64,000 bases of DNA from Monocercomonoides exilis PA203 (Eukaryota; Protista; Preaxostyla): positions 682,001-746,000 of the forward strand of contig LSRY02000046.1 in assembly GCA_001643675.2 (NCBI GenBank). Direction: 5' to 3'. This document shows, one piece after another, positions 2,900-45,294 of this stretch. Under the pieces are notes generated by a model that searched no databases, was not told where the DNA came from, and worked only from the letters and a program-made list of their open reading frames with translations. Made by a program: the position numbers and the translations under genes. Each line of letters opens with the position of its first letter. Position 1 is the first letter of the stretch.

Positions 2900-3595
2900 A
2901 TCTGGGGGATAATTCGGACTTTTAACCTTTTTTTTTTTTTTTTTTTTTTTTTACTCAAAGTTCAGTCGTTCATCGTTCATGTTAATTGTTAAATGTTGCC
3001 AACGATAATTCTTAAATTATTATGGTTGTTTCAGTTAAACATATTTGAATATCTTTTTATTGGAAATGCCTTTCGCTATTTCAACTTTTAGCACATCTTC
3101 ATTTGAAACAGTTTTAACAGGATTTATTCCAAAATTGGACCTCCACTTCATTTCTGTCTTCTTGTCGCGAAACACTCAAAAACGAAAGTTTCATTAATTC
3201 GTTCCTTCTTCAACGCTTGCAAAATGAGAAAAGTTAAAATTCCTTCTAACGTGCGAATTGCAAAGGCACTCAACTGCACACCGAGCCTTGTCTGCCAGGA
3301 AAGCACCGGATATATAAGGAAAAAGGTAATTGAGAAAAAAAACATGTTGACGACTCGAAAGCAAGAAAAACGAGTCACGGAAATTTCAAAAAATCTGAGA
3401 GATAAAAGAAAGCAAATCACACCGAAAACGCTAAAAACCGTTGTTGCGAAAGTTTCTCATAAAACGCCTTCTCACAATTTTCATTCTTCATTCATAAAAA
3501 GGCATAACGAGGAATCGATGATCGTTCCTTCAAGCGTAAGAGAAGAAAAAAGAATGAAAATATCGGAACAAAGCATCATCATCTGGAAAAATCAT

Positions 3596-6512
3596 GGCAT
3601 AAGTGTAAAAAAACACCTCCTCCAATTTCACGATTTCATTCATGATAATAAGTGGTAATAAATAACATAAAAAAGCAACACTTTTGGGTGGAGCAGTTTT
3701 TTTCGATTTCAACACAAAATATCAAAAATAAATATTTATGATCTGTCCCATTATTAAATTTTTATTTCAATATTTTTTGCATAAAACTTTAATGCCCGTG
3801 AATTGAATGTTGATCTTTGGATTTGATTATGCAGTACTTAAAAACTTAACAAATGAGGTTTGAAATTTACACTTTATTTCTGTATTTAAACGCTATTTTT
3901 CCAGTTTTATAAAATGTGATTTTGGGAGAGACTTCTTGTTTGCTCAAAAATTGTTCAATCAATGATCATGGTGGAGCAATATGTTGCGATTTCCTACTTA
4001 ACATAGACATCATAAAATGCAATTTCACAAGTTGTTCTGCTTTCCATGGAGAAGCAGCTGCTATATAGTGTCCTCAAACAAATTCTGTTTGGATATTCTC
4101 AGAAAACAAAGTGGAAAGTTGTTCAATAACATATTGGTGTGGAACGGGTTGGTATTTCTTGCTAAACGACTTGTCCGCATCTGGCCAATTCCTGTTCACC
4201 AAATGCAAGTGCATCGCAAATTCTGGTGGTGATTCAACAGGCTCACTTGCATTTAATTATCCTCCACAAAATAAACCAAATCAATTTTTGGTTAATGATT
4301 GCCAGTTTATAAACAATAAATTGACATCAACTTCAACTTCATTGGGAGGTGCTGCAATGTTTTTCAGAGACACATATGATTGGATGAATGGAACAAAATT
4401 CATCACATTCTGTTTCTTCGATGGAAATACAGCAACATATGGCATGTGAAATGATATGTTCTTTAATGGAAGCATCATCACTCAATCCTCATTCAATCAG
4501 TGTTGATCATCACCCTTGGTAAAAAGAGTGTGGAACAGCAATACAGCTGACAATGCAGTGATCAATGACTGGCTCCCCCTCATTGCACAGAACAAAATTG
4601 TTTCTGACAACAAAACTGATGCTAGCGCCTGTGGAGAACCCCAACAGACCCTATGTGCCACCATCGAGTGTACTCTCAACTGCTTCATTTCCCTCCTCCA
4701 AGATGCCTTCCTCGCTCTCCCCACCTCAATATTTGCTCCCACTCTAACGCTCTCTTTCGGTGCAACTGATGCAGAAATTTCTAAAAAAGGAACAATTGCT
4801 CGGTCATTTGAATCTTCATGTAATGCCCATTGACATTACTCATGTTCATCGTCATATTTTCTTCTTATCTTTTGCCTCTTTCTCTTCTTCTTCTTCTTCT
4901 TCTTCTTCCACTTCCTCTTCATCGATCTCTTCTCCACCTTATCCTCTCAACAGCTCTCAATCAGATCTTCAATACTCCTTCTTCGACTTTTTCGTGATCT
5001 TCTGTTTTCTCCTGTAATCTCTCTCTTCTCCTCCAATACCCACTTTCATGAGTATTGGCTCTGTCCTCTCCATCGAAAACCCTTTTTTCAGAGCGAAATT
5101 CGTCATTCGCACAGGTTCCACCTGGCTCAAAGAAGCCATATGCCTGTGAGTCATTGAATTCAACATCAGAAAGAAGTCCCTCCCACCCTTCAAACTCTTC
5201 AAGCACATCCTCAGAAGCTCCTTGAGAAGAACCAACTTTGCAAGGAAAGTCAACTATGGGGGACTCCTTAACTGAATCTTAAACATTCACGATTCTACAA
5301 GACTTATCCACGCTTGCCTCGTGACTGCCGGACTACCTCGCAACAATGAAATCGTCAGAGCATTCGTAATACCTCGTTAACGACTTGAACCTCCTTCCTT
5401 ATTCGCACTTTAACAACTTTCTCTTCTGAACAGCTGTTTTTTACAAACAAACATATACAAGTTCGCTTCATGTTTATATTCTCCACATTTCATAAAACAA
5501 AAATAGTCTATTTTTATTATATCATCTGTTTGATTAGAAAAAGAGATTGATAAAGAGACAAAAAAGTTGAAGCAAAAGAAAGGAAATCAAAAGAATGCTG
5601 TCAGAAAAGATGAAAATATGAAAAAGATAGACGAAATGATATAGTTTATGTTATGGTTTGTTTTTCTGTTTTCATATATAAAAATGTGTCAATAGGTGTT
5701 TCAAATAGCTCATTTTTGTTGTTTTCTTGAGGTTTAAAAAAGAAAACATTCTTGCATTACATCAAAAAAACAAAAAATGCATCATTATTTTCTGTTTGTG
5801 AACATGAAATATTTTCGTATTTTCAAAAGTTTTACTTTTTAAACATTTGAACTTTATGCAACATTAAAAAAATATCTAAACTTTTCTTTCTTATGAAAAT
5901 TCTGAAATGATTATCACTTAATAAAATGAACACACACGAGTAGGATGTGCAAATAATCATATAACATAAACGTTCATTTTCCCTTATTCAAACACAACAA
6001 TTATAATTGTCTTTATTTCAAAGTTATTGCTCACCAGTTTTAAGATTGCAAAACAAATAAACAACGATTTAAATTGTTAAAAAAAGACCAAGAAAAAATC
6101 AAATACTTAATTTGACATTATACAAAATAAAAATGGAAATATTAATTCAACAAAATTATATGAAATTATTATTTTACAACTGTTATATAGGTGTAAGTTA
6201 GTAATCAATTGAACAACATTGAAAAGGAAATAAAAACTGTGTGTAATCGTTATCATTAATGATTTAGGAATTGTTGCGTTATTTATTCCTAAGATCAACA
6301 TTCAATTCACGGGCATTAAAGTTTTATGCAAAAAATATTGAAATAAAAATTTAATAATGGGACAGATCATAAATATTTATTTTTGATATTTTGTGTTGAA
6401 ATCGAAAAAAACTGCTCCACCCAAAAGTGTTGCTTTTTTATGTTATTTATTACCACTTATTATCATGAATGAAATCGTGAAATTGGAGGAGGTGTTTTTT
6501 TACACTTATGCC
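3596..6512. mobile_element. Non-autonomous TIR DNA transposon (2917 bp) with 222-bp TIRs, 8-bp TSD and captured gene fragments (Pack-type)
   Basis: 3596-3817 (GGCATAAGTG...GTTGATCTT) is the reverse complement of 6291-6512, with no mismatch seen by eye. AAAATCAT is duplicated at 3588-3595 and 6513-6520. No transposase ORF lies inside. Confidence 0.93.
3913..4833 (+). pseudogene. Captured fragment of a beta-helix surface-protein ectodomain module
   Basis: One frame with 3 internal stops: GGAICC...FITFCFFDGNTA..*NDMFF...KRVW...DWLP...VSDNKTDASACG....CATI. The motif order matches the N-terminal module of the giant receptors (FFLFFHEC..G.D...KR...WL...V...GND...CG...C.T). Confidence 0.75.
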
Positions 6513-8713
6513 AAAATCATTTGGTTCAATATGCGTGTGGAAAATATTCATCCTTGATCTTCTGTGCTGATGAATCAGGTTATCACGCACATGAAGATAC
6601 AAGAAAGATGAACCTTATTGTCGGAACAAATGAAAATCGTGTAATTGATCACACGCCTGTTGACAGAGGAGAAAAAAGGTTATCATTGCTCCACTGCATT
6701 TCACTTGATGGTACTTTTGTCCCTCCTTGTTTTCTGGTGCAAAAACCGTTCAACACAAGATCCCTTCGGTCTCTAGGCTATCAAATAGGAATTCATGGTT
6801 GCGTAGAAGTCGGAAATTCGTCTTATTTTATAAAAGGAGTGGTTTGAAAACTGGATTGAGAAAGTTTTCATTCCTCATGTCAACATTAAAAGAATGATTT
6901 TGCCAGATAAACACGCACAGGCAGTGTTGATTCTTGATGGCTGCAGAATCCACCTATCGGATAATGTATTGACTCGTCTTTATAATGAGAATATTTTGCT
7001 TTTGGTTTTGCCTCTGAATACAACAAACTTGTTGCAGTCATTGGATTTATAAATTTTTTCTCTTTGGAAACTTCAAATTCAACAGGTTAGATCAGGTTCA
7101 ACGCATGATAGTATGGAACAACTTTTGTGGGTTGCAGTGAATGCCATTCTGCAAGTTTCTTCATCGATCAACATTTTTTCTACATTCAAAGAAAGTGGAC
7201 TTGTGAATGATTTTCAAAAAACTCCTTTAACAGCCCAGATCTTTGAAGAAAGCTTCAAAAAAGTGATGGAAATTGTGAAATAGGTCAACAAATCATTGCC
7301 GCTTTCATATACAAGAAAAACAAGACAAACAAAGGGAGGTTTATGGGGAATAATGAACATTGACAAAATCCCAGTTTATTTTGGACTTCCGCAATAAACA
7401 ACACTTGGCGAACAATTGATATGTGAAAGAGTTTTTTTCATTTATATTTCATGGAGCATTTCAAAAAAAAAACATGATAAAATAAACAAAATAATTATCA
7501 AATTTTTGTTTTTCTTTATTTCAATAATACAAAAAGAATTAACAATTAACAAGAACAGTGAGAATCTGTTCAACAATGTTGTTTCACTCATTATTTTATA
7601 AAACTTTTTCAGATTTCAAAGTTGAATTCACATTTCAGAAAACAGGTATTATTGATTGCAATAACAGAATGATTTGTGACCTGACACGTGCCTCAAAAAA
7701 GAACAAATTTCGTTGATATTTTTCTTTCACGAAAAGTGAATTAAAAGTTTAAATTTTTTGCATGAAAATGCCTGAAGTTGCATAACTGAACCTATCTTTT
7801 TGAATTTATTTGAAAAGTTCCTTTAGTTCAATTCTCAAAATGTGAATATTCATTTTTCATTATCAACTGAAAATTATACAAAATGAACTTTACAAAAGAA
7901 TAAATACATATTTTTTTGCGGGAATAGAAAATTGATCAAAATATGAACATTTATTATAATCATCAGAATTTTTCATTTGCGACTTTAAAAAAAAAGAATA
8001 TCACAAATTTATCACATTTTTTTATGAAAAATAAAATTTGTTTTATTTATTGTATATCAAAATGCTCACAATACTCCACTTAAAAATAGCCATTGGAAAA
8101 TTGAAGCAAAATCAACAGCCTTTTTTCCCAAGAATCTCTTTTTGGAATCATTTTTTTGTGTGTATTCTTTTTGTTGCAAACACCATTCCAATTTGTTTTT
8201 CAAGAAGGATCGAGCTTGGCCCGGCCATTGGAAATGCCTCATTCATCTTCCTTATTCTCAAAAAAATTCGACAATGCACACGTGCACAAAAAACATTTCT
8301 TTTCATTTCCATATTCGTTGATTCCTTTGTCACAATACCTCTCAAAAATCAAAAACAGTGACCATTTGAAAAAACAGAAAAGAAAACTTCTGAGCAACAA
8401 CTCAAACGAATGGAAAACTTCCAGTCATCAAGTTGATGATAATTCAACAAGCCAAAACACTTTTCAAAACGAAAATAAATGATCAGAGAAGCAAAAGACA
8501 ACACATCATGCGCGAGCAGATGCTCAATTCTCGACAATTCGACATTCTGCACAAAATGCAACAATGAATGAACTTCTTGTGGGAGCTGAGATATTTGTAA
8601 CGTTTCCTTCTTATTTCCAGCTTTGCTTCTTGCAAGTGAAGTGGAATGTATTTCCACAAATGATAACATCACAAGTTTTTTATTTCGTGTGATCTTTTTT
8701 TATTTTCAACTTT

Positions 8714-11700
8714 TCATTTCGTGCCAATGTTTTGAACTTCATTGATTGCTGCAACTGTCTCCCTGCTGTCGTTCTTCCTGTTGCTCTGCCCATCATTCCT
8801 CGATGGAACCAGATATGCGATTGCATCCGACACCGTGAACATCGCTCCATCCTTCGGGAATCTTCCAAACAGCACTCGCTTCACTTCCACCAGCGTCGGC
8901 CGGCTTTTCCTCTCCCCGCACCAGCATGCCTCCACATATCTCTGGAACTCCGCTGGCAGCTTTTCCAACGCAGGCCTTTCCCCATTCACAATCTTCTGCC
9001 CTGCTGTCTCTGCCTCAAACTCCCCAAACGGCACCTTCAATGTCAAGCACTCCCACAGCATCATCCCAATCGAAAACACAACTGACTTCTTTGACACTCC
9101 CATGTTCTTGTTCATCAGCAGCTCTGGTGCCTTCCACCTCAAACTCTCTTTTTTGAAATCATCCTCATCCTCAAAGGCTGATGAAGGAAGAGAATCTTCA
9201 TCATCATCTTCACTTGCTGAAGTCGCAACCGTTGATGAAGAGATGGATGAGGAATCAGAATCATCAGAAGAGAAGTCTGAATGCATCACAATGCAGATCA
9301 CCATGTGTTCTGAAAACAATACAATATGAGGGCTCAGAGTGGAAAGAGAAGAGAGAGGATTTTCCATTTCATCAAACGAGTGAAGTGCGAGATTCGCCAC
9401 CCAGAACAGGATTTGAGCAGCTGTTTGCTCTCTTTCCTTCAATGTGCAAATTGCCATCTCTTTCTTCTCATTCCTTCCGTGCAACAACATGAACAGCGAA
9501 TCTCTCAAATCCACAATCAGCTTCTCGTAAGGGCATGAGCAGGCCATTGCATCCACCAGATTCGACATCGATGAAGTGGTTGGGCATGCATCTTCCATTC
9601 GAACAAATGATGAATCTGAGTCAGTTGTTGAAGTGGAAGATATTGAAGGTGAAGGAGTTCTTTTTCTTGTCTCTTCTTCTTCCTTTTCGTCAACCTTCTC
9701 CAGCATCCATTGAGGGATCTTATCTGAATCTTTCCCCAAGATATATTCAGTTGACCCACTCTCACTCAGCAAATGCTCAGATGACTCCGAATGTCCCAAG
9801 CTTTTCTCATACACCCTCCTCTTTATCATCTCTTCATTCTTCTTTTCTACTTCCCTTTCGGCCCTTCTCCATTGTTCCTCAGGCAACATCTCCATCGTCA
9901 TCATCTCAATCAGCTTCGGATCCTTCCTCACTGAATCTTCCACAATCTCCTCCAGTTCTTCTGTTCTTCTCTTTTGCTTTCTCCATCGAACAGCCAGGAT
10001 AATAGATACAATAAGAACAATCAACAATAAAATAACAAGCACAATCACAATCAACAACCAATAAGATTTCTGTTCTTTTCCTCCTTCAACAAATTTTTCA
10101 TCTCCATTAATCTTTGTTTCGCTTGCATTCTTCAGTATGAATGACTGTGTCGAAGAAGGAGATTCCACATAACCAAACATTAAATATACAGTCACCTCTA
10201 TTTCATTTCCACAGCTGCTGATCAGATCTTTTGTTGCACTTCCTTCAACTTCTCTTTCCGATAAAAACCCATTTGAATCAAAATTATGTTTTTCAATCTC
10301 TTTCTCTTCTCCCTTTCTCTTCACAACTGAGAATGACAGATTGCATGGAACAAAAAGCATCCCTTTGAATATAAGCTTCATTCTATTTGCCTCTTCTTTT
10401 GATTCCACACTCTCCAGAACAGAAATGAAGAATGATGAATCCCTTTCTGAAACAATACCTTCAAAACTGCACCCATCATTCAACATCTAAAGAGATGTGT
10501 TTCTTTCCCATCCATCTCCTCCTTTCAAACTCATCACATTCAATGTTCCTAAATCTGAGCAGATGATATTCCTTCTCAGCGATGGATATCCTTCAATTGA
10601 TGGATTGTTGTTCATGAACTCTCCTTTAACAATTATAACATTTCCTCCTCTCATTGTTATTCCTCCATTCGATGAGCCGGCAATCGTTGTATCTTCGACT
10701 TTCACTTTGCTCTCAGTTAAATCAACAGCTGAACCGTTCCACCAACAAATCTTCTCTCTCTCAATAATGTTTGTTTTTGGCCCTTCATCTGCAGTTCCAC
10801 AATCAATTTTGCACCCATCAACAAAAACTCCCTCACTCATCCAAACCTGAATCACATTTCCTTTTCCTGCCAAGCTCTGGCATCCCACCAATGTGCAGTT
10901 CGACAAACTCGTTGCTTCACGTGAATTGCTGCACCTAATCCCTGCTGCCTTCTCACATCCGCTTGTCACATTCAGGAGTTTTGAGTGACACACCTTCATC
11001 TCTCTCCCTCCATCCCTGTTCTCAATCTCACAAAACGATCCTTCATCCATCCTTATGTTTTCCACCTCCACATCTCCAAACAACCCTTCACAATCCCTCG
11101 CACAAATCCCTCCATATTTGCAACAAATGCTCTTGATCTTCATCTCACGCACCGACACAGCTCCTCCAAAACACATCAGCCACTCAGCACTAACATGCTC
11201 CACTTCGCAATTTCTCATCATCACTTGCCCTCCTGTACACTTCACAAGAACAGGAACACCAGACTCGTATGCCTCTGGCTCCAACGAACCAAAACTCACT
11301 TCAGAGAACGAAATCGACTCCTGATCCACATCAAACACCACTTTGTGTGCTGTGGGAAACACCTTCCCAAACATAAAGCTCACAAGCTCCACAACCACTT
11401 TCCCACCAACCTCTATCACCCCTTCTCGCGTGCAAACAAGAGACTCGCCAATCGTGATTTTTGCCTTCTCCCAGCTCTTCGAACGCATCACAACATCCCC
11501 AATCTCAATCTCTTTCTCGATCTCGCTCTCTCCATCCACTGCCACCATCGAGTTGAACCCTGCCACAACATGCTCCATCCCATACCCCACCGACAAGCAC
11601 GGCTGCTCCACAGTCCCGCACTTCCGCCAGTTCCCTCCCCCTTTCCCAAACACATTCGATACAACAATCGTCGACGACTGACACACTGTTATCAGCTCAA

Positions 11701-14700
11701 TCAAGTCCACAGGCTCCTCTTCCACCTCGTCAATCCCATATATCCCGTTCCCCCGGATATACACCTCTGCACGTAGATCCATCTTGAACTGGCTTTCGTT
11801 TATCTGCCTGCTGATATTCACACACTCAATAAACACATCCCTCCCAACATGCGCCTTGTTTCCACTCAGCTTCACCCCCTCAAACACAAAGCCCAGATCT
11901 CCCCGAAGCTCACTCCACAAATACACTCCTCCGCCTCTCCCAACTGCCTCGCTGCACTCACACTCCACAATCCTCCCATCCTTCACCAGAATATTCCCTC
12001 CTTCATTCAGCTTCAGCAGCATCCCTCCCCCTTTGCTGCTCCCTCTCGCCTTGCACGATTCAAACACACTTCCATTCACCACCACTTTCACACCCCCGCT
12101 GCACACACTCTCCAACACACTCGGCCCATCATCCTCTCGCTCAACCATCACAAACTCTGTTCCGTTCATAACCACACTTGTTGCCTCATGCTCATCAGCC
12201 CCGTTGCTCCCTCCTTCAACAGCAATCCCACTTCCTCCTAAATGCGTCTCAAACTCCATCTTCACTTTCTCCAGCGTGCAGCTCACACCTTCAAATACCA
12301 CAATCCCAGACCCTCTCATCCTTATTCTCTCAAATGTCACCTTCTTCATCATCAAGCTTCCTGCCTTCACAACCACAAAAGACGGGCTCCTCCCATTTTC
12401 AGGCACTTCGCTCACCACTCTGCATCCCTCAAATTCAACTGCTTTTCCTCTCCCGCTCACAACCTCCTTTTTCTCTGCCCCAACAGATACACCAATCACG
12501 ATCTTCAGATTCTTCACACAAAATGTCTCCTCGCATCTCACAAACCACTCCTCGCCTCCTTCGCTCTTCCCACAAAACAGCAGCATGTCTTTGCTTTCCT
12601 CTTCATCTTCCCTTCCACCTCCCCTCCAAGTTACATTCGCCAAGTCCCATTCATCCTCCACTCTCCCAAGCTCCATCACAACCACCTCTTTCATCTCTCT
12701 TGTATTCTCAAGCTGTCCCATCCCTTTCCACATTGAAAAGCACTGATCGTCCTCGCTCCCACACCTTTTCACATCTTCTCCACTCCCACAAACATGAATC
12801 TTCTTCGAGCTGTATCCTACAACATATCGCAGAAGATCCCTCTCTTCTGCCCCCTCTTCTCTCCCTTTCTTTCCCACAAACTCATTCTCGCTCTCCATCA
12901 ACCCTGACAAGTCAAATGCAAACGAATCTCCTGAAGCACTCTTGTTCAGATCTCCTCCAACCACAAACACACTCTTTCCTCTATGTGCCTGATTCCCTTT
13001 CAAGCTCACATCCTTCAGCTGAAATGGCTGATCTGCCACTGATGCAAGACTGTCCACAAACAGAAACCCACCATGCCCACTTGTCGCAGAACACTCACAC
13101 TCCCATCCATCTGTTCTGTTCAGCATCAGTGCTTGTGCGTCTGCCAACGTCACCTTCAATCCTCCCCCTTCCTCCCCATCTCGCCTCTTCATCCCCACGA
13201 TTCTGCACTCTTCAAACACCCCACTCGAATAGATATCAAACGGACACACTGAAAACCTCCCACTCTCAATCGTGCACGAAACCATGTGAACACTCCCACC
13301 CTTCGCCTTCAGCACTCCATATCTCACACCATCCAAACTCCCAAGCACAAACAGACATTCCTGCATGCCCAATATTCCACTCTCACTTTCAGAATACAGC
13401 ACAGCTTCTTGCCCCCTTTCCAACACAGCAGGAAGACAAAACTCCACTTTCTCAAACCCTGCTGTCTTCCTGTTTTCAAACACCCATTTCCCATCTCCTC
13501 CTTTCACTTCCATCCCCACCTCCACAACACTCACTTCTCCTTCAACACTTGATTCAACAACAATCCCTGAAACATCCTCCCAGTCTCCCACTTTGGCTCT
13601 TCCTTTGATCTTGATTCTCCCGCCTTCACTCCCATCCCGATCAACGTTATTCACTCCTCTCCACAAACTCTTGCATGGCAAACTCCCATTCCCACACCCC
13701 ACCATGTCACACCCTTCCTCGCTCACATGCACCTCCCTCCACTTCCACTCCACCAGAAACACACACAAGTTCACATGCCTCTCCACAAATCTCACTCTGT
13801 CCACTCCCTGCATATCCACTATTTCTCTTCCTTCTTCGTTCGTCACACGCAGCCCAAATCTCTCTGCAGTCACAGTTTCGTTCAAGTCCCTGCAATCTAA
13901 AAACATATCTCTCCCATATGCTCCCGAGTTCTGCAGAAACACAATCCCCTCAAAACGGATCATCCCACTTGTCCTGTTGTCCACATACACAAAAACCCCT
14001 CCCCCTCTCCCACTCTCCTCATTCACGCTGCACTGCTCCACCTCTCCATTCACAAACTCAAAACTTCCCCCCTCATCCACCACCCATTTCATCCCTCCTC
14101 CATCCCCAAACACCGATCTGCACCCATTAAACACATTCCCTTCCTCAATCTCAACACGCTGCGCCTTCTTCATCTCCATCACCCCTCCTCGCTTCACCTC
14201 CACATCCACAATATTCCCCCTCCACATCCCAAACTTAATCCCTTCTTCCCCTTCAATCAGACTCTTCCCCTTTCCAACAATCTTCGATATGTTCGTGTTG
14301 TTCATGTGAAACACTCCACCTTTCACAGCCCCAATCCCTCCTTCACCTGAGAACATCATCCCTTCCACAACAACCTGCTCCATTCGCACTTCTCCTCCAA
14401 CCTCATCCACAATCCTCATTCCCGTCTCCTCCTTTTCCCCACCTCCTGCCCCAAACTTGCAGTTCATAACCATCATCACCCCAACGCAAATCCGTAATGC
14501 CCCACTGTTTCCTTCTCCTCCAACCCTTGGCAGCTTGAACCTCAATCTGTTCAATACCAGTGTTGTTTGTCCATCTCCCTCATCCTGAACAAAGCACCCC
14601 CATTCCCCAAATTCTAAAAGACTATCCCCATTTCTCCCCCGAACAGCCAGCGATATCCCTTTTCGGTTGATCTCGCTCTCAATGCTGTTTTCGTTGTTGA

Positions 14701-17700
14701 TCTGGATCGTCGTTTTGTCATCTCCCATGTGCCCAAACCCATCTGCAAACTTGTCACACGGTGACACCTCGCTTCCACAGGTGTCTGCCACTGTGCTCCT
14801 CCCTGCCTCAACAAACACAATCACCCCCTCAGACGGGAAAAGATACTTCTTCACCGACAGATCAATCATCGTGTCTGTCAACGAGTCCACCACCCACACA
14901 TTCTCCTCTGGAGTGCTCTCCTCATCCACTGACCCCATCCACAGATCCTCCCGCAGCATCACATCCGGATCACCACTCACAACAAACACATCCATCCCCT
15001 TTGCTGCAGCATTCTCTTTGAACACATCCCCCTTCATCGAGTATCCCGCCTCCACATCCTCAAACTCCACAAACACCCCTCCTCCATATCCCTTGGTTCC
15101 CACCACTGCACACTTCTCCACTCTGTTCAAGTCAAACACAAACTTCCCCTTCCTTCCCACACTCACCATCACACCTCCTCCACATGACGGATTCCCCACA
15201 CACTTCCCTTCCATCACTGTGCAGTTCTTCACCTCCACTTTTTTCTCCTCCCCAACCCTCCCTGCAAACACCCCTCCATCCCCACTCCTCCGAGTCACAT
15301 TCGTCAAGCTGCTGTTCCGAACTGTCGCCTCTGCTCCAGAATCAAATTCTAACACACTCCCGCCATCCACCACAATCTCATCTACTGAACTGTTTTCCAT
15401 CGTTAGCACCGAATACACACTCGCCAAAATCAGTCCACTTTCTGCTTCGCTCCTCACATCCTCCATTTCCAACTCCAAAAACACTCCTTCCCCTCCCCTC
15501 ACCTCAAACACTTCCACCCCTCCAAAACTCATCTTCTCCATCCTCATCCCCCGAACCTCCACCTTTCCCCCAATCGCCTTCAACACACAAAACTCAACTT
15601 TTTCTGTGGGCATTCTTTGCTGCACACTGCACCTTTTCATCTCCAGCACTTCTCCTTTGCAGGCAAACAAGCAATCCCTTTTCACTTTTATGAATCTCGA
15701 TGGAATCGAAAACGACAAATTCGCCATCACCACATTCACCGTTGTTTCCACAAGCCCTTCTCCTTCCCCTTCTCCTTCTCCACTCACCACCACATTTGTC
15801 AATCCTTCCGTCTCAACCCCTTTCAAGCTCACCTTCTGCAATCCCACCGATTCATGGTTTTTCAGTTCGAACGATCCCATCACAATTATCTCTGCAGTTT
15901 CCACACTTGATCCAGCAAATCGAGTCTTCACCACTCCCCCAATCGTCTCGCATGGTGCATATACAACTCCACACCCTGAATGATCAAACCCAAAATCCTC
16001 TGCTCCTCCAACATACCCACTCCCCACAAATTCATCCAGATACGCATCAAGCGGAATCCCAAATCTTTCATCCGTCGTCATTCTCTCATACCCCATCAGA
16101 TCCCTCAGCTCCATTCCTTCTTTCTCAAAAGCAAACCTCTCCTTCTTCACGATTTCACTCAGATCCTTCCCATCAACAAACACATTTCTCCCCATCCAGC
16201 CCTTGCAACCACTGAACTCCACTCCCTCCAACACAAAATCACATGTCTCCTCACAACACAATATGAATATTCCTCCTCCAAGTCCTCTTTCCCTTTCTCT
16301 TTCTCCATCTGGCACACTGCACCCCAGAAACTTTGCTTTCTTCATCAGCACACTTGCGCACGAACCTTCACAGACCATCATCCCTCCTCCTCGAACTCCT
16401 CCTTCTCCTTCGCATCCACTCTCAAATGTGCTGTTTTCCACACACACTTCCTCCCTCTCATTGCCCCTGCTCAACACTTCAAAGCATCCTCCATCACCGC
16501 CATTGTGCACAACTCTCCCAAACACACTGTTGTTCACAACCATCTTCCTCGCCTCCTCAACAGCAAATGGCACAACACCAAACTCCACTTTTCCGCTCCC
16601 CTCAATCACAAACTCCTCCAGACAGACTTTACCTCCTTCAACATTCACCAGATGATACAACACCACAAACCCTGCACTTTCTGATTCAAACTGAACTCCA
16701 CACCATTTCATCCCCAAATCCCCTCCAACACTTTCGATCAAACACTCTGTCCCGCCAAGAGATCCTGGCACACATATTGTGCAGTTCGTCATCTGTGTCT
16801 CTGTGCTCGTCTTCACAATTCCTTTTTCTCTGTTTCCATCCCCAGCAACCACCTCCACCTGCGTTCCTTTTCTGACACACCACACATCCCATTTCTCTCC
16901 GCTCATCTCCACTCCCTCTTCCCACAGAAACCCTTCCTCCACAATAATCTGCTTCCTCCCCTCTTTGAATCGCAATGACACAAGCTTCTCGATCGTCCTG
17001 CACCCATACCCTTCAAATCCACACACACTGAAATCTCGTGCATTCTCTCCTCCAACAAACCCTGCCACTCCTTCAACACTGATAAAATAAAATGAAAGCG
17101 GAATCACATATCTCTCCTCCTCCCCTTCAAGCCCCATCGCTTCATGGTCTCTTCCCCGATCTGCCTTCACCACATTCACAAGCTGCACTCCTCCAACAGC
17201 CTTCATAAGATCCTCTCCCCACACAAACACATTGTCTCCCCCGCATTCTGCCTTGTTTGCTGCTCCTCCCTCCCCAAACACAACATTTCTCACTTCATAT
17301 CCATATCCCCCATCCCTCACACACTTCACAAACAAACCTCCTCCAAACCCACCAACCCCACTCTCCCCATCTGCACCTTCCCCTCTCTTGCTCTCACACT
17401 TTTCAATCGTTGTTTCGCTCTCACTCCTTCCCATCTCAAACACCCCTCCTCCACTTATCTCCACAGACACACCACCTCCACATCCATTCCTTGCAATGCA
17501 CCCAATGAAACTGTTGTTCCAAACTCTTCCCTCTTTCCCTTCTCCAATCACACACCTTATCCCACTCCCATCTCCTCCTTTGCTCCATATCCCACTGAAT
17601 GTGCACTCTCTGACCTCCAGCCTCCTCCCTCCCTCCCCAACCAATATCCCACCCTCCTCAACCTCCACTCCCTCAAACACAGTCCGCTCCACCAGAAACT

Positions 17701-20700
17701 CCCCACTCGATCTATGCCACACCATTCCACCAGCGCATGCAACTCTTCCCCCTGTGATGTTCCCCTGGCTCATCACCCCTCCTCCTGCACCTTCCACCCC
17801 AATCACACACCTCCCCTCAAAACTCAGCCCATCAATCCGAAGCTGCTTCACATTCACACTGCCTCCACTGCACATCACCAGCACATACCCAATCGTAATC
17901 CCTTCTCCTCCTTCAAACTTGCACTGCTGCACTTCCAGACTCCCGCTTTCGCACATTATCAGGCATCTCCCTGCTCCCACACTCCCCGGAATCGACATCA
18001 GAAGATTCACAAACGATGCTTTTGCTCTCGTCGTGATCATCCCATCTGTCACACCATCCTCATTCCTTCCAATCTCCACTCGAGGCTGCGAAGTCTGCCC
18101 TTTCACTACAACTGTCCCCCTCGACACCAAAACATCCTTCTTCAGCACTGCACCGTGGCTCGCCGCAACCGTCACCCCAGACACACTCCCATGCGTCTCA
18201 ATCGCATAGTCCACACTCATGCACTGCATGTCCACAAACCCACACATCTCCCAGTCCTTTTTGTTTGTTCCCCCAACAAAGTATTCCAAAGGCTTCTCCC
18301 GAAGATACGCAACCAGCGGGATCACATTCTCTTCGTCGCTGCCTTCAAACCCACACAGCTCGATCAGGTTCAATTCGTCAGTCTGGAACTTCAACCGCTC
18401 TCTGTTCACCACTTCCTTCAGCTTGTGTGCCTTTATAAACACCATCGTCCCTCCCACACTCGCGTTGCACCCAGAAAACCTCACTTTTTCCAGCGCAAAG
18501 TCTTCTGCCCCTTCCTTCAGCTCCAGAATCACTCCTCCTCCATGGCCTCCTCCATTTCCTCCCTTGTTTGCTCTGCACTCCTCAAACACTGTTTCCATCC
18601 CCTTCCCAACTCTCACTTTCGATCCTGTTCCCATCTCCACTCTTATCCCTCCTCCATCCCCGCTCTCGCATCGGCACTCTCTCATCGTCACATTTGTTAT
18701 TTCAAGCTCTTCCTCAAAACACAACACTCGAGACATCACGCTCCCATCACCCTCCAGCCGAACAACATTCAAAAACTCCACATTCGACAAATTCACATGT
18801 GACCCGCACCCCTGCCCCAGAACTCCAATATTTCCCATGAATACCCCAGAAATTACAACGTATTCCATCTCCAACTCCCCACCTCCAGCTTCTATTCCGA
18901 ACAGACCCACTTCAAATCCACTCATTCCAGAACTCCATTCAGATCCTCGCACTTCAATCCGCCTCATCTCCACTTTCCCTCCTCCTTTGATCAATACCAC
19001 TCCAATCCTCATCTTGGCATGCGAATGCTCAATCGCCAACGATCTCAATCGCATGCTTCCACTTCCCACACAAAACAGGCTTCTTCCGCTTGTCATCTTC
19101 CCAGTGCTGACCACTGTCTTATCCACACCCTCTCCGCACACACAAACACATCGACTTCCAACTCCAATTTCTCCTTCCTCGGACAAGTGCTTTCCGCTTC
19201 CAACATATATCTTCGCCTCAAATTGTGTCATGCATTTTCCAAATGAATGCCTTATTGTTCGGCACCCTGCTTCTTCCTTCAATCCACATAATTGCACCGC
19301 ATCATTCCCATTTGTTGCAACAAAACAGCTTGTAATCTGCACTTTCGATGTTGGCAACCATCCACTTTCGTATTTTCCTGTAGCAGACCAATATAACCGT
19401 TTTTCGTTTGTGTTTGTGGAATAACATTCCTTCAGTGGGCATGAAGTGATATTTACTTCTGGATATGATTGAAGAATGCACATATCATGTCCAAGAGGAC
19501 TTTCAATACTTGTGCAAGAACATTCGTGGAAAAACAAAAAGAAAAAAGCCGTAATGCTTGATTGGTCACCAGAATAGACAACAAAATGATGGCGAATTGC
19601 TCCACCTTCTCTAACACTTGTGCATTTCACAAATTGACAGCTTCTTATTGCAAAATAAGTTGTGTATGACCATGCTATTATTGTACCATGATAACCGTTG
19701 TTTTTGCAATTCACAAACTGACAATCAATAATTTGTGCTTGCCCTCCATTTCCATCATTTGATCCCAAACACTCCAAAGGCAATTGAGAAAAACCTCCAT
19801 TCCAATAAACTGCACTTCCACCGCTTTCATAGATAATAGAATTCTTAAATAAGCACCTTTGAAGAATTGAGCACTCAACATTAGAAATTTTTTGAATGCA
19901 TCCTGCAGTTTTAGCTGAATTGTTAATAAACAGCGTTTCGGTTATTTCCGTATTTCTAACAAGCGATTCCGCGATTGCTCCTCCATTCAGCGCATAACAG
20001 TTTGTGAAGCTGCATCGCATCACGTTCAGTGACACTTCAGATGAGTTGACAAACAGCGCCCCTCCGTTCCCCTCGTCCGCTCTGCATCCTGTGAACGTGT
20101 CATCCTCAAACGATGCAGACCCTCCAACAACAATCCTTCCATCGGCTCCACTGTAATCTGCATATTTGTTTGACTTCCGCATGCACCGCTCAAAAGAGCA
20201 GTTGAACGACAACAGAAGCGATGAAGGCTCATTTATTGATTCTGTTATCGCTCCATCAACCACATCATCAACATTCACAAAAACAACACTCCTCATTGTT
20301 GTTTCACATCCATGCCAATCTCCTTGCCTGCCTTTCTGCCATTCATCCCCAGTGATATTTTCAAATCTCGTCTGGCTCACTTCCAAAGTTCCCACCGTTC
20401 CCCCAACAAGGAATGGAGCTCCAGTTCCCAATCTCAACGAGCCAAACAAGCAATCTGTCACACTCACTTCTCCATTAAATCCCTCTTGCTCCACATTCCT
20501 TGGACGATCAAACAAAGATGGCATCTTCCCACAAACATTTCCTGCCCTCGTGCTGACATTCACCAAAAGCACCCTTCCCCCAAAAAGTCTAAATGGAGAA
20601 ACATCAGACGATAAAACTGAAACTTCTGTATTCAACAGTGCCAACTCAGACTTTTCTTCAATTTCAAACAAGAATAACTCTTTCATTCCACAAATATGCA

Positions 20701-21130
20701 CATCGCTCATTGAAACAGATGAATTCACAACAAATGTGCATGCGCAAATCTGATTTTTTCCATTCATCTCCTTTCCCAAAAATCTTACAAAACCATTCAT
20801 TGCACAAATGTCTTCATTTCCCTTTCCGAATTCTCCATTGACATTTGCCTTTTGTTCTTTCGATATTTCAAAAAAGTCTTTTTCCTCTTTTTCTGCCACA
20901 TTTCCTTCGCACATTTCCAATTTCTTTCTCTCCTCCTCAAAGCGGCTCTTTGATATTCCTTCTTTTTCGCCTTCAACCAATTTTGCACAACAAAACTCCT
21001 TTCTTCCAATCCTGGATTTTTTCTCATTTTCTGCTCTTTCTGATGCACTCTCCGTCCCCTCGCATCCAGCTATTACAACCAGAAGCAGCAAACAGATCAT
21101 TCTTGCATTCCTTCCTGAGATGAGGCGCAT
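8714..21130 (-). CDS. Giant single-pass receptor-like protein (about 4,140 codons): signal peptide, about 8 Cys/Gly-rich beta-helix modules, TM helix, tyrosine-kinase-like pseudokinase tail; one in-frame TAG at 10487-10489
   Basis: ORFs 10487-21343 and 8714-10486 are in the same frame and abut. Signal-like MICLLLLVVIAGCEG (ATG at 21130 or 21100), repeated CGx4-5Cx(T/S) and GGG/GxDVF motifs, TM YWLLIVIVLVILLLIVLIVSIILAV, and kinase C-lobe LRWKAPE...SVVFSIGMMLWECLT..PF. No HRD or DFG motif is visible. Confidence 0.85.
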
Positions 21131-21449
21131 CACCTTTTGTTTTCTTTTTGAATTCAAATTTTTTTCTTTTCTTCTGTGATCTTCATATAATATTTTAATC
21201 ATAATATCGAATAAAAAAAAGTGAATGAAGCAAAAGAAGGATTTATTTTCTCTTGAATCACACATTATAATTTTTTTAAAAAAATTACATTGAAAAAGAA
21301 AAAAATGCAAAGCAGAAAAGAAAAAGAAACAATATATAACCATTGAAAAATGTGAGAGCTTTGTGAGAAATTTTGTTTGCTTTTGAAAAACAAAGATGAA
21401 AGCGAAAATGAAAATTCACTTATCAGCATGTACGATTATCAATCAACAC

Positions 21450-27451: not shown

Positions 27452-29462
27452 GGGTCATCTTTTTATTGGCACTTTTTTCTTTATTGGCACCAAAATTTTT
27501 TGAAATGAAAAAAAATTAAAAACACATCAAAAAAATACAAAACTCGAATCAATCACTCTTTTCACTTTTCATTTTCCATTTTCACGTTCAAAGGGGTCAA
27601 ATTCATCACTTGTTTCATCGTCATCATTCTTAATTTTTCTGAATTTCCTTTTCACTTTTTTCTTCAAAGGCAATTCTTCTTCTTCAATTTTTTTTTTCTT
27701 TTTCTTCAATTTCTTCAATTTTCATCTTGTGTTTTTCATTGCACACATCCCATTCATCAAGAAGCTTTTCTTTTGTTATTTATTTACCGAAGAAGTCGAA
27801 ACAATGAGAATGAGAAGGAATGAAGTATTGAGAAGACTGAGGAAGTTTCATCAACGCAGATCCACATCCATTGCTGAGGACTCCGCTGTTAATGAAGGCT
27901 TTTTTGATGACTGATGGGGTGAATGCTGTGTGAAGGGCTTGTGGCAACACATCCGCAACAGCTGTTCTTTTTGAAGATGAGGAGGTGGATGACGGAGAGC
28001 TGTAATTGTTTGATAGCTCTGACTTCAACACTGCAAATACGCCTCTGTCCAGCGGCTGCGATATGTGCGTGGTGTGTGGAACGAAGGTGAAGACGTCAAT
28101 TTCGGCTTCCTTGAACTGTCTCCATATCGTTGGATCAGCACGTGATGAGTGCGAGTCCAGGAGAAGAAGGCAACGGTGAGATTCCTTCAAGATACGTTTT
28201 CTTCTGTCAATGATAGCTGGCAGCAGAACTGTTAAGGCGTATTTTTTGAATGACGTTTTATCCATCCAGCCGTTTGTGTTTGGCCAAATGTCAAGCGACG
28301 GCGTCAACAGTGTTGTAAGTTCTTTCGGAAGATTTGCGCTCGGCCACAGCACGACAGACGGAAGCGAGAAGCCATCAGCAGCGATTCCAGCAACGAGAGT
28401 GGCATTTGGCATCCTTTCAGCAGTCTTTTTGAACACAGCTTGTTCATCTGCAGGATGAACAACAACGCCACGTGTAGAAATTGGAATTCGAAGCGAAGAT
28501 TCATCTATATTGAAGATTAATTCCTCTGGATATTTATTTTCATTGTGTAATACTTGTAATTCTGTATACCACGGTTTTAGGACTTTCTGGCAAGATGCTG
28601 CTAGTCTGTTGATATCAACTTGTTTTGGCAGCGAGGACTTCAGTTCCGGATGTCTCTGTATGAAGGCGTGAACTGTCTTTAAAGTTACAGTCCTTTTCTT
28701 ATTTTCTTCTTTTTCTCCTTCTTCTTCACTATCGTTAATAATGTTTTCCATCTAAATACCAATTAATATACAATTCAAATATCAATCGCAAACCAGATCG
28801 CGCGCTTTTCGTAATGTGAGGCTTGTCCCAGATCGAGATTCTATTGTAACTTCTTCCAAGAATTGTTTTTCTTTTTCACCGCTAATAATTGGTGGATGAC
28901 CAACTTTTGCAATAGGCCTGCCGTTTTTTATGGCTTTAACTGCGTGCTCCAAAGATTTTTTGCTGATTCCGCCATATTTTACTCCGTCGGCCAGCCTGAC
29001 AACATTGTCATTAACAATGTGCGCAATCCTTTCTAATCTTGTTTCATATTTCCTGTAATGTAATGTAGACATTGCTTCCTTCAGACGCTTCTGCGCCGCT
29101 TCAGCTTTCTTTTTCACTAGTAATTTCATTTATATATTATGGGTAATGATCGTTAATAAATTTTTTTATTTATTAATTCTCATTAAAATATTTTTAATTA
29201 ATATTTAAATTTTTGAATGAATTAGAAATATTTACAAACCTTTGTGCAGTCCAATTTCTCATGAAAGCTCAATGGAAGGACTTGAACCCCCCCATTTCCC
29301 CCCCATGAGAAATTGGATTTCTTTCAAAATTCAAATATTAGATTATATCACATTTGTATATATACCAAAAATAAATTTTAAAATATCATTTGTGGGTCAG
29401 ATTAATTTTTATTTAAAAAAAAAGTGCCAATAAAGAAAAAAGTGCCAATAAAAAGATGACCC
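27452..29462 (-). mobile_element. Full-length pogo-type DNA transposon (2011 bp), 39-bp TIRs, TA TSD
   Basis: GGGTCATCTTTTTATTGGCACTTTTTTCTTTATTGGCAC at 27452-27490 is inverted at 29424-29462, with TA on both sides. Each TIR holds two TTTATTGGCAC direct repeats. Confidence 0.93.
27780..29129 (-). CDS. pogo-type DD35D transposase with a 42-nt intron (28752-28793)
   Basis: ORFs 28782-29129 (HTH-like, GHPPII) and 27780-28751 join via GTTTG...TTTAG (ARDL|MENII). Catalytic motifs IFNIDESS, LLLLDSH and SQPLD have 35-residue spacing. The frame continues past the TAA at 27780 (GK*ITKEKLLDEW), so the stop may be premature. Confidence 0.88.
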
Positions 29463-32878: not shown

Positions 32879-33425
32879 TATCTATTATTTTTATATGGGA
32901 AGTCCTTTTTTATCAAATTATATAACTATAACAAATTTTTGTGTGTGTGAACAAAAATATTGATTTGATAAACAATAAAAATTCAAGACATTTGAAACAA
33001 TATAAATGTGTTATGATAAAGAACGAATAAGATGTGAATTTTTTTATTTTCACTGAGTGAGGTTTTTTTAAAAGGTTATTTTATTTTTTCCAGACAAAAT
33101 TTTAAAATCAAATATCTTAACAAATATACAATAAAAATTTTCAGCTATTTGTAAACTTGCATGTTCACATGCATGGCATCGATTTATAAACGAATTTTTT
33201 ATGGCAGTGTTGTACAGTCAAAACCGGATATAATCACGTCGAATATAATCGCATTCGAATATTGTCACATTTTTCGATGCACCGACATTTTTTGTTTGTT
33301 TTTCATTCATTTTCCATCGCATACAATCACAGGGATGAAAATACAGATATCGCACAAAATTCCGGACAAGATCGATTTCACAATAACGACAAGAGGAATA
33401 ATTCTGACAATTTTCCTCAAAATAT

Positions 33426-33664
33426 GGGTGATTCTTTTTGAAAAGTCACAAATGTTTAATTCTCAATAAAATCAAAATCTTATATTTTTCTTAATATTTT
33501 GTTTACAAATGTTAAACTTCACTTTAATGGAATCCATTACTTGATAATGCAATTTCAAACATTCTTACGGAGATTTGTGAGCTGAAACAGAAATTTGAGC
33601 ATAATATGAAATTTGAAATTTATTTGTAAATTAAACATTTGTGACTTTTCAAAAAGAATCACCC
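33426..33664. mobile_element. 239-bp MITE, GGGTGATT family, 36-bp TIRs, 4-bp TSD ATAT
   Basis: GGGTGATTCTTTTTGAAAAGTCACAAATGTTTAATT is perfectly inverted at 33629-33664. ATAT lies at 33422-33425 and 33665-33668. The host element's uninterrupted right arm aligns without gaps only if 4 bp are duplicated. Confidence 0.9.
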
Positions 33665-33721
33665 ATATATCTCATCGAAACAAACTCATTTGATATTCAA
33701 AACTGGTAAAAGGAGATTATA

Positions 33722-35256
33722 GGGGAACACGAATTTTTCAAATTTTTTATTGTTAATGAATTCTATATAGTATAAGAATCATTTATATATAAATCAAAAT
33801 TAGAGATCATCGAGGTTTTTTATGAAAAATTTTCAAAAATATTCGAAAAAATTATGGGTTAGATCAAATTATGGCTGAAGAAGAAAACTACAAAAACATA
33901 TCAAATATATCTTCTCTCTGTGATATTTTCAGTGATAGAAAATTAGCATGGGACTATTATTTTCACATCATTTACAGAGGCTTCAAACCAATTTGCTTCC
34001 GCCATCACACTCCAAAATTTTTCACTATAAGAGAGCCGTGCTATTATTATTGGCGATGTAGCAAATGCAGAACAAAAGAATCTGTTTTCAAGAATACAAC
34101 ATTTGCAAAAAACAGAATTCCAATTCACAAACTACTAAAGATTCTTTTGTTTTATTGGATTGGATTGAGCATACGTCACATTTCTCTAATTACTGGGATT
34201 CACAGACACACAGTTGGTTATTGGGCAAGTTTATTTCGATCTGTTTGCACACAGTTATGGAATAAAAATCAAGAGCCAATTGGAGGTGAAGGAGTTGATG
34301 TAGAAATTGACGAAGCCATTTGGCGAAGGAGAAAATATCATTGTGGCCGAGCAAAAAAACAGATCTGGATTTTCGGTGGTATCGAAAGGAAGGCAGATGG
34401 AGCAGAAAAGAAAAAATTCGTTATAATTGTTCCAAACAGAAAAGCAGAAACATTAATTCCTATAATAAAAGAGAAGATCAAGATTGAATCCACAATTTTT
34501 TCGGATCAATGGAAGGCATATGCAAAAGTTGGTGAGCTGGGATACACCCACAAAATTGTTTGTCATAAACGAAATTTTATGGATCCTGAAACAAAAGCCT
34601 GCACAAGTACTATAGAAGGCTTTTGGAGCAGCTTACGATCTTCTTTCCCGAGGCATGGGTGCAGAGAAAAATTTCTGAGTGACTATTTGTCGTTATTTAT
34701 GATCAGGCAACAAAATAAATACACTTTTGACGAAATTCTTGAAGAGATCGTTCATTTCAAGCCTGATAAAGAACAAGAAGATGATGATGAGGAAGAAATT
34801 CCTTTCGAGGTTGAAGATGATGAGCATATTCCAGACGAATATGATGTTTTGCATGGAGAGGATTTATCTGAATCGGATTCAGATGATTTGGGAGCAGGAG
34901 ATGGATCAGACGCTTCAGAATATGAAGGTTGAAGAAAAAGGCAAGAAAATAATCCTTTTTAATATTATTTTCGAACATTATTTTGATAAAAATACATAAT
35001 TTAACATAATTCTTTTTTTGTTTTTTGAAAAATAGTGAAATGAAGTTACCCAATTGTGTTCAATATCCCAAAAAACTAACGAAAGAGATCATTATTAAGG
35101 TATCGCACCCAATAAAAACCAAAAATTGGTTTGATCAAATCATCAAATTTTTTCATAAAAAACCTCGATGATCTCTAATTTTGATTTATATATAAATGAT
35201 TCTTATACTATATAGAATTCATTAACAATAAAAAATTTGAAAAATTCGTGTTCCCC
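33722..35256 (+). mobile_element. Merlin/IS1595-type DNA transposon (1535 bp) with about 108-bp TIRs
   Basis: GGGGAACACGAATTTTTC...TTATGAAAAA (33722-33829) is inverted at about 35149-35256. The element is flanked by TATA on both sides and encloses one transposase ORF. Confidence 0.9.
33871..34932 (+). CDS. IS1595/Merlin-family DDE transposase, 353 aa, apparently intact
   Basis: N-terminal Zn-ribbon (WRCSKC), HTH-like segment, motifs VEIDE, KYHCGR, WIFGG, NRKAETL, IFSDQWKAY, H..V.H...F and TSTIEGFW, and an acidic tail. Confidence 0.93.
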   Translation: MAEEENYKNISNISSLCDIFSDRKLAWDYYFHIIYRGFKPICFRHHTPKFFTIREPCYYYWRCSKCRTKESVFKNTTFAKNRIPIHKLLKILLFYWIGLSIRHISLITGIHRHTVGYWASLFRSVCTQLWNKNQEPIGGEGVDVEIDEAIWRRRKYHCGRAKKQIWIFGGIERKADGAEKKKFVIIVPNRKAETLIPIIKEKIKIESTIFSDQWKAYAKVGELGYTHKIVCHKRNFMDPETKACTSTIEGFWSSLRSSFPRHGCREKFLSDYLSLFMIRQQNKYTFDEILEEIVHFKPDKEQEDDDEEEIPFEVEDDEHIPDEYDVLHGEDLSESDSDDLGAGDGSDASEYEG

Positions 35257-35800
35257 TATAATATACATTTACCTCAAAACTTTCAAAATAGCTTCATTTG
35301 TTCTCATAAAAAAATATTATTGAAATTTCGGAGAAACTCAAAATCCTATTTTTCCTTGTTTACTAAATATTTTTTCCGAACACAAATGGAGCTATTTTGA
35401 AAGATTAGAATATCAAATGAGTTTGTTTTAATGGGTTATATTTTGAGGAAAATTATCAGAATTATTCCTCTTGCATTTATTGTGAAATCGATCTTGTCAG
35501 GTATTTTGTGCGATATCTGTAAAATGTTCACCGAAAAGTGAAAGGACTGAATAAAGACATTTTCTTCTGAATTTAAGCTGATTCATTAATTCAAAAAACA
35601 AGGTTTAAAATCGAAATGTTAAATTTATTTCCACTTTCACAATGATAAAAAAATTTAAAAAATATGCATCCCGAAAAAAGTTATGATTTCGAAAATAATC
35701 ACCTATTTTTCAAAAAAAAATATGTTCATTGTTCAAAAAAATTTATATTAATTCAATCAAATGAAAAAAATAAAAAATCAATTTATCAAAAAGAAAATAA

Positions 35801-45100: not shown

Positions 45101-45294
45101 CTGAGATATGGAAGCAGAGTGTTGGCATGGAAAACACAAATAGACCATCATTGGTGAATTTGAAACGAGAATTTTTCAAGCATTTTCCGAAAGAAGCAGT
45201 GATTGTGACAGTGTCTGATGCTATTGATTATGAAGATGATGAGGAGGAGAAGAGCTTGGATGTTATCACCAAAGCTTCTAAAGACACATGCTGA
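36106..45294 (+). CDS. Second giant single-pass receptor-like pseudokinase (about 3,060 codons, about 5 ectodomain modules); one in-frame TAA at 40138-40140
   Basis: ORFs 36106-40140 and 40141-45294 are in frame and abut. Signal-like MLKEALIALVAVITS, TM YWALIIAGIFVVFLLIITVVLAV, and a cytoplasmic tail nearly identical to the 8714-10486 paralogue (SLGHSESSEHLLSESGSTEYILG, LRWKAPELLMN). Confidence 0.85.

Follow-up and report, generated by a model that had tools for sequence, protein, structure and literature searches.

A Merlin transposon of Monocercomonoides exilis carries a cassette from a receptor-kinase-like gene family that was probably rewritten by segmental gene conversion

We analysed a stretch of 64,000 nucleotides from the genome of Monocercomonoides exilis PA203, a gut protist without a mitochondrion (contig LSRY02000046.1, positions 682,001 to 746,000; the whole stretch is called the window below). 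At positions 3596-6512 it contains a DNA transposon of 2,917 bp, in which a fragment of a host receptor gene, here called the cassette, lies between long terminal inverted repeats (TIRs) (Table 1). The element is real. An earlier note on this DNA had described identical 222-bp TIRs starting with GG, an 8-bp target-site duplication (TSD) and no transposase, and this description held. In short-read contigs of other copies of the repeat that hosts the insertion, position 3587 is joined to position 6513 and the 8-mer is present once, so AAAATCAT is a true TSD. No long open reading frame (ORF) or transposase was found inside 3596-6512. The short-read contigs were built from public runs, all of one study and possibly of the same culture as the assembly, and none of them was RNA. 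The genome searched was the M. exilis assembly of 82.3 Mb in 101 contigs.

Table 1. Features of the element and its insertion site, in window positions.
Feature	Position	Strand	Description
Host of the insertion	3100-7200 (limits approximate)	+	Multi-copy repeat, decayed, similar to a DDE_1 (pogo-like) transposase gene; weak tblastn match across the junction (E 0.007), high contig depth, empty-site joint
Left TSD	3588-3595	+	AAAATCAT; single copy at empty paralogous sites
Left TIR	3596-3817	+	222 bp, starts GG, Merlin type
Captured cassette	3931-4833	+	About 300 codons, N-terminal beta-helix module of receptor/tyrosine-kinase-like family; no start codon
Replaced (converted) tract	about 4126-4688	+	126/555 differences to sister vs 81/2354 elsewhere; dS 0.76, dN 0.23
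Patch	4125-4215	+	Best matches, 94%: C98:8219/4479 and C25:1588445/1584681
Patch	4325-4415	+	Best match, 96%: a different locus, C10:1554629
TCT-rich low-complexity run	4860-4940		Length varies among copies
Element backbone	4960-6270		Nearly confined to TIR-bounded copies; AT-rich outside 5064-5481
Right TIR	6291-6512	-	222/222 identical to left arm
Right TSD	6513-6520	+	AAAATCAT, same 8-mer as left

The terminal 25-mer of the element occurs 54 times in the genome, 27 times per strand (control pattern, 0), which corresponds to a family of about 25 copies of 2.5-11 kb. Tabulation of the TIR-paired copies, their TSDs and their cargo had been proposed in the earlier note. Among the 18 copies examined with both ends, a perfect 8-bp TSD was found in 12 and a 9-bp TSD with one mismatch in one; one other copy had a damaged end, and in four the flanks were themselves inverted copies. 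In all 18, the receptor module lay a few hundred bases inward of one TIR, at the same position even in lineages whose TIRs were only 78-79% like those of the window element, and further cargo beyond the cassette varied between sub-lineages.

The autonomous partner with the same TIR, whose existence had been anticipated, was found at C48:349895-356396 (copy L042). It has a 642-codon open frame that matches DDE_Tnp_IS1595 (PF12762, E 3.5e-18), with DDE blocks marked by the motifs VEIDET, VYSDMW and TIECMW. The cassette lies behind the transposase, both within one TSD (a perfect 8-bp CTTAGTTC on both sides) and with the same terminal sequence; the TIR is 89% identical to that of the window element over 187 bp. 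Five copies encode a transposase and all five carry the cassette downstream of it, thus cargo is not a mark of non-autonomous copies only. The five closest transposases in the genome are 95-100% identical, followed by one 83% fragment, and the rest reach at most 55% over comparable lengths. In four of the five, the transposase begins about 980 bp in from a paired terminus; for the fifth (C63), a single terminus was located, upstream of the transposase. The DDE frames are intact in four copies. Four of the five transposase-encoding copies, as well as the candidate donor loci discussed below, were characterised by coordinates and identity only.

In the passages available of PMC8101967, Merlin elements are defined by TIRs starting with 5'-GG, a TSD of 8-9 bp and an IS1595-type domain, and absence of the N-terminal Zn_Tnp_IS1595 domain serves as a further criterion. 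The open frame of the partner has no Pfam zinc-finger match and contains a CxxC motif at residue 49 and another at residue 71. The GG ends, the TSD of 8 or 9 bp and the IS1595-type partner therefore identify the window element as a non-autonomous Merlin. Merlin had already been named as a candidate. The long TIRs and the likeness to Pack-MULEs had also suggested a Mutator-like element (MULE), a superfamily that is ruled out by the IS1595-type partner transposase and the 8-bp TSD.

The window holds a second, apparently intact Merlin at 33705-35273, with a 353-amino-acid PF12762 ORF at 33871-34932 and the TSD TCAAAACT; it sits inside an 84-bp inverted-repeat element at 33342-35521. It was rejected as the partner, since its ends differ and its transposase is 31% identical to that of the true partner. 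Another copy of the family, L043 (C58:968000-975100), sits within a retroelement whose frames resemble a reverse transcriptase and a tyrosine recombinase and which looks DIRS-like by eye.

The cassette was read in the frame 3934-4830, where the motif order and the three stops noticed earlier were recovered; the stops are at 4066, 4447 and 4504, and the first is common to the window element and its nearest sister copy. Short-read contigs were identical to 4206-4290, 4408-4548 and 4549-4665 with zero differences. This result indicated that the cargo is not a Nanopore artefact, and it ruled out an assembly artefact. The cassette is 51-72% identical to annotated proteins of its family, its close protein matches were all MONOS genes, and the nine strongest long or named relatives examined (50% clustering) were all from M. 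exilis. Full-length members have 2200-2650 amino acids. In MONOS_5057, MONOS_16610 and MONOS_7112 (2226-2645 amino acids), PF07714 scored above cut-off near the C terminus, and a hydrophobic, transmembrane-like segment was present in both of two full-length members inspected. The family protein resembles a single-pass receptor whose kinase-like tail is degenerate, rather than a coat antigen.

The cassette itself had no Pfam matches. A structure model of the corresponding module of MONOS_3086 was all-beta, with predicted local distance difference test (pLDDT) scores of 70-88 over residues 31-160. Foldseek against PDB gave no significant match. In a VIA-align search the model aligned with right-handed beta-helix proteins, pectate lyases and tailspikes among them (best Z 13.8, root-mean-square deviation 2.8, 181 aligned residues), suggesting that the module is a right-handed beta-helix, a prediction of fold and not of function.

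The source of the cassette is the tyrosine-kinase-like (TKL) family, which is described in parts of the genome papers as the largest gene family of M. exilis, with 320 TKL genes (PMC6759080, PMC8767320). The source subfamily, at 76-82% DNA identity, comprises about 540-570 candidate loci, many of which lie in clusters on C25, and is another subfamily than that of the two receptors in the window. The earlier note had derived the cargo from the variable ectodomain of a giant receptor family, which was correct, and had regarded the window receptors as its close match or source, which they are not. The protein of the receptor at 10487-21343 was 25-29% identical to sister cassettes (E 1e-4 to 6e-6 in a five-protein set), that of the receptor at 36106-40140 had no BLAST match to the cassettes, and neither receptor matched them at the DNA level; both were ruled out as the source, being distant relatives only. 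These receptor genes, at 8714-21343 (-) and 36106-45294 (+), have one in-frame stop each (TAG at 10487-10489 on the minus strand and TAA at 40138-40140); in their C-terminal parts, which match PF07714, the two are 81-85% alike in DNA sequence.

Comparison with the nearest sister, L031 (C27:181361-184278), revealed that part of the cassette has diverged far more than the rest of the element. Divergence was 3.4% outside the tract and 23% inside, where the ratio of nonsynonymous to synonymous divergence (dN/dS) was 0.3; neutral decay would be expected to leave about 3% divergence and a dN/dS near 1. For 78 of 142 differences, both alleles recur in other copies. The two sisters share both cassette edges at 93-98%, including the stop codon, and differ only in the middle. 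Excess cassette divergence was also found in the pairs L032/L034 and L039/L040, with shorter patches in L047/48/49, and dN/dS was 0.2-0.4 in the sister pairs named here. In three transposase-encoding sisters, identity was about 74-80% in the cassette, an estimate by subtraction, against 89-90% in the adjacent DNA.

Backbone and cassette distances among 11 copies were uncorrelated (Mantel rho -0.01). In the approximately unbiased (AU) test, the backbone tree was rejected for the cassette (p 3e-39) and the cassette tree was rejected for the backbone (p 5e-5). The expectation that different copies carry different versions of the cargo was supported. The C98/C25 loci and the C10 locus, which match two patches of the tract best, are each missing from the match list of the other patch, and at the protein level segments of the cassette match different annotated genes. 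The tract sequence was confirmed by short-read contigs, whose depth was far greater on the cassette than on the backbone. Annotated family proteins were mosaic among themselves as well (0/3000 permutations in a test like the pairwise homoplasy index). Stop density was 1.1% in the core and 2.9% at the 5' edge, a contrast of little weight because shared stops are not independent.

One copy bears on the direction of transfer. Only in L032 does the receptor sequence run on for 160 further residues, which are 61-80% identical to annotated MONOS proteins, before it returns to element sequence through a duplicated stretch. No other examined element could supply it, therefore transfer from gene to element with template switching is the simplest reading; the alternative is loss of the 160 residues from all other lineages. 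No tract transferred from element to gene was identified, and no genome-wide scan for such tracts was made. The cassette of L032 (C2) is an open 444-codon frame whose 3' part is annotated as gene MONOS_10244, and that of L039 (C91) also matches a database protein, thus some annotated family members are transposon cargo.

We consider it probable that one ancient capture was followed by spread of the Merlin and then by recurrent rounds of ectopic segmental conversion with the host family, in which the cassette is mainly a passenger. An ancestral Merlin of M. exilis would have captured, once, part of a receptor-kinase-like gene, from its N-terminal beta-helix module, and transposase-encoding and non-autonomous lineages would both have retained it and spread it by cut-and-paste transposition. 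The shared ends, the TSDs, the partner transposase and the presence of the cassette in all examined copies document this part. Because the genome holds about 550 homologous modules, the cassette would then have entered ectopic segmental gene conversion, patches of about 100-600 bp being overwritten from other family members while element-specific DNA was inherited normally. This exchange is documented by the decoupled history, the coding-type divergence, the patch-level matches and the one gain of receptor sequence. Its means may be double-strand-break or gap repair with template switching, possibly assisted by transposase cuts at the nearby TIR, and similar repair between the arms may keep the TIRs identical. 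The cassettes make no receptor themselves and would act mostly as passengers and recipients. Since ordinary receptor genes are mosaic too, the exchange seems to run through the whole family and can proceed without the transposon, and the passenger role is the most likely one; a selected donor role is not needed to explain the data.

Several observations weigh against this reading. The pair L036/L038 has no clear excess of cassette divergence. The backbone also shows a recombination signal, therefore exchange was not confined to the cassette. The patch matches are at 94-96%, not 100%, and no whole-tract donor above 82% was found for either tract (best 80-82%, with 40 of about 550 candidates scored). 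The set of host proteins was only partly verified as lying outside elements, and the reading does not account for the retention of the cassette in the transposase-encoding lineage.

A different reading is that the transposon-borne cassettes, together with the cluster on C25, form a silent archive from which variable segments pass into expressed receptor genes, like vls cassettes or pseudogenes of variant surface glycoproteins (VSGs), with transposition spreading and preserving the donors. Variable segments within a conserved framework do assort combinatorially among cassettes and annotated genes, the window cassette has rare motifs in common with MONOS_9448, MONOS_3086 and the full-length MONOS_16610, and the cassette was retained in all old sub-lineages. 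On C25, at about 1.58-2.50 Mb, dozens of ectodomain modules lie at a spacing of 2-10 kb, too close for all of them to be whole receptors; many form inverted pairs with identical scores and some are nested. This cluster is possibly a cassette archive near a chromosome end. However, the sole directional case runs from gene to element, and of about 550 modules the roughly 25 element copies account for only a small part. We therefore regard the archive as unlikely. It is similarly doubtful that the cassettes carried by the Merlin elements serve as working donors, as part of a transposon-assisted, VSG/vlsE-like diversification of the giant beta-helix receptor-kinase-like family, with transposase breaks driving the shuffling.

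Independent capture of a different receptor gene by each copy or sub-lineage, in the style of Pack-MULEs and with no later conversion, would fit the extra cargo that differs between sub-lineages. It was largely refuted by the shared junctions, namely the cassette edges and stop codon common to sisters and the same cassette position in lineages with diverged TIRs, and we give it very little credence. Local hypermutation or neutral decay of the tract, with no copying from other loci, could account for the private damage of the window copy, including two stops, and is most improbable given the low dN/dS, a synonymous divergence about 25 times that of the backbone, the recurrence of most alleles elsewhere and the patches that match other loci.

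Conversion, which we prefer as the explanation for the cassette, also seems to have acted on the TIRs. The window element and L031, whose backbones have diverged by about 3%, differ at five TIR positions, and at all five the two arms of either element agree. In cut-and-paste transposition, the arms are not both rebuilt from a single template. The arms appear to have been homogenised by arm-to-arm conversion, so TIR identity cannot date the insertion, and the identical TIRs are not the sign of youth that they had been taken for. That the element moved after capture was nevertheless correct, as follows from the copy number and from the stop at 4066 shared with L031. The inverted repeat is 222 to about 370 bp long across copies, and in four copies the inversion extends outward by hundreds of bases to more than 1 kb and the TSD is lost. 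These copies with inverted-duplicate flanks (230 bp to more than 1 kb) are L034, L044, L045 and L046; L044 and L045 have a transposase fragment of another Merlin in both flanks, and L046 lies inside an 11-kb element (C53:492097-503248).

Within the backbone, 5064-5481 has a single distant relative (66%, at C6:1674834) and is possibly a second old captured piece. Elsewhere in the window, an ORF of 323 amino acids at 27780-28751 (-) encodes a DDE_1 (pogo/Tigger-like) transposase, and a serine-rich ORF of 4051 amino acids at 50616-62771 (+) had no Pfam match.

Because each sister pair can be dated by its backbone, these elements are natural reporters of fast segmental conversion in the N-terminal module of the TKL family, the largest of M. 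exilis. Combinatorial diversification of surface receptors in a gut protist thereby becomes a testable question. The age of DNA transposons in this genome cannot be read from TIR identity. We found no literature on host-gene cargo in Merlin elements, on Pack-type cargo rewritten after capture or on conversion in the M. exilis receptor-kinase-like family, most subscription papers lying outside the search.

Merlin transposons are reportedly related to IS1595/IS1016, a relationship ascribed to work by Feschotte in 2004. The family described here resembles them in its GG-starting TIRs within 24-462 bp, its 8-bp (once 9-bp) TSD and its DDE_Tnp_IS1595 partner transposase. PMC8101967 reports, in the parts available, more than 100 Merlin copies in at least 7 families in M. 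exilis, most families with TIRs of 23-29 bp, and these parts do not mention host cargo. In the family studied here, TIRs measure 222-368 bp, and autonomous as well as non-autonomous copies contain a host fragment. As for the TKL family, the full-length relatives of the cassette share the C-terminal PF07714. The passages searched of PMC6759080 and PMC8767320 list the family only as tyrosine-kinase-like genes that overlap unclassified repeats, and include neither transposon carriage nor conversion.

Pack-MULE and Pack-TYPE elements are known from plants (PMC5861414, PMC8903248) and Pack-TIRs from animals (PMC8277862), and template switching in gap repair is one route of capture that has been proposed. 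In neither PMC8277862 nor PMC8903248 does the main text contain the word "Merlin". The earlier classification as a Pack-type element was justified: a host gene fragment between long TIRs was transposed as a unit to multiple insertion sites with their own TSDs, and extra cargo varies. Pack-MULEs differ in their Mutator-type transposase and TSD of 9-10 bp. Unlike other Pack-TIR and Pack-TYPE elements, this family belongs to the Merlin superfamily, its fragment is a fixed family trait including the transposase-encoding copies, and the fragment was apparently rewritten after capture by exchange with a very large host family; no single parental gene above 82% was found among the scored candidates, and patches trace to different loci.

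The last comparison is with antigenic variation. Trypanosome VSG mosaics arise by segmental gene conversion from silent cassettes. The same holds for Borrelia vlsE (PMC2780311). Like these cassettes, those of M. exilis lack a promoter and are broken copies of a surface protein's variable part, with a patchwork in a conserved framework and segmental mosaics formed among homologous variable regions. The resemblance is in the mosaic pattern only; here the cassettes ride on a transposon and are seen as recipients.

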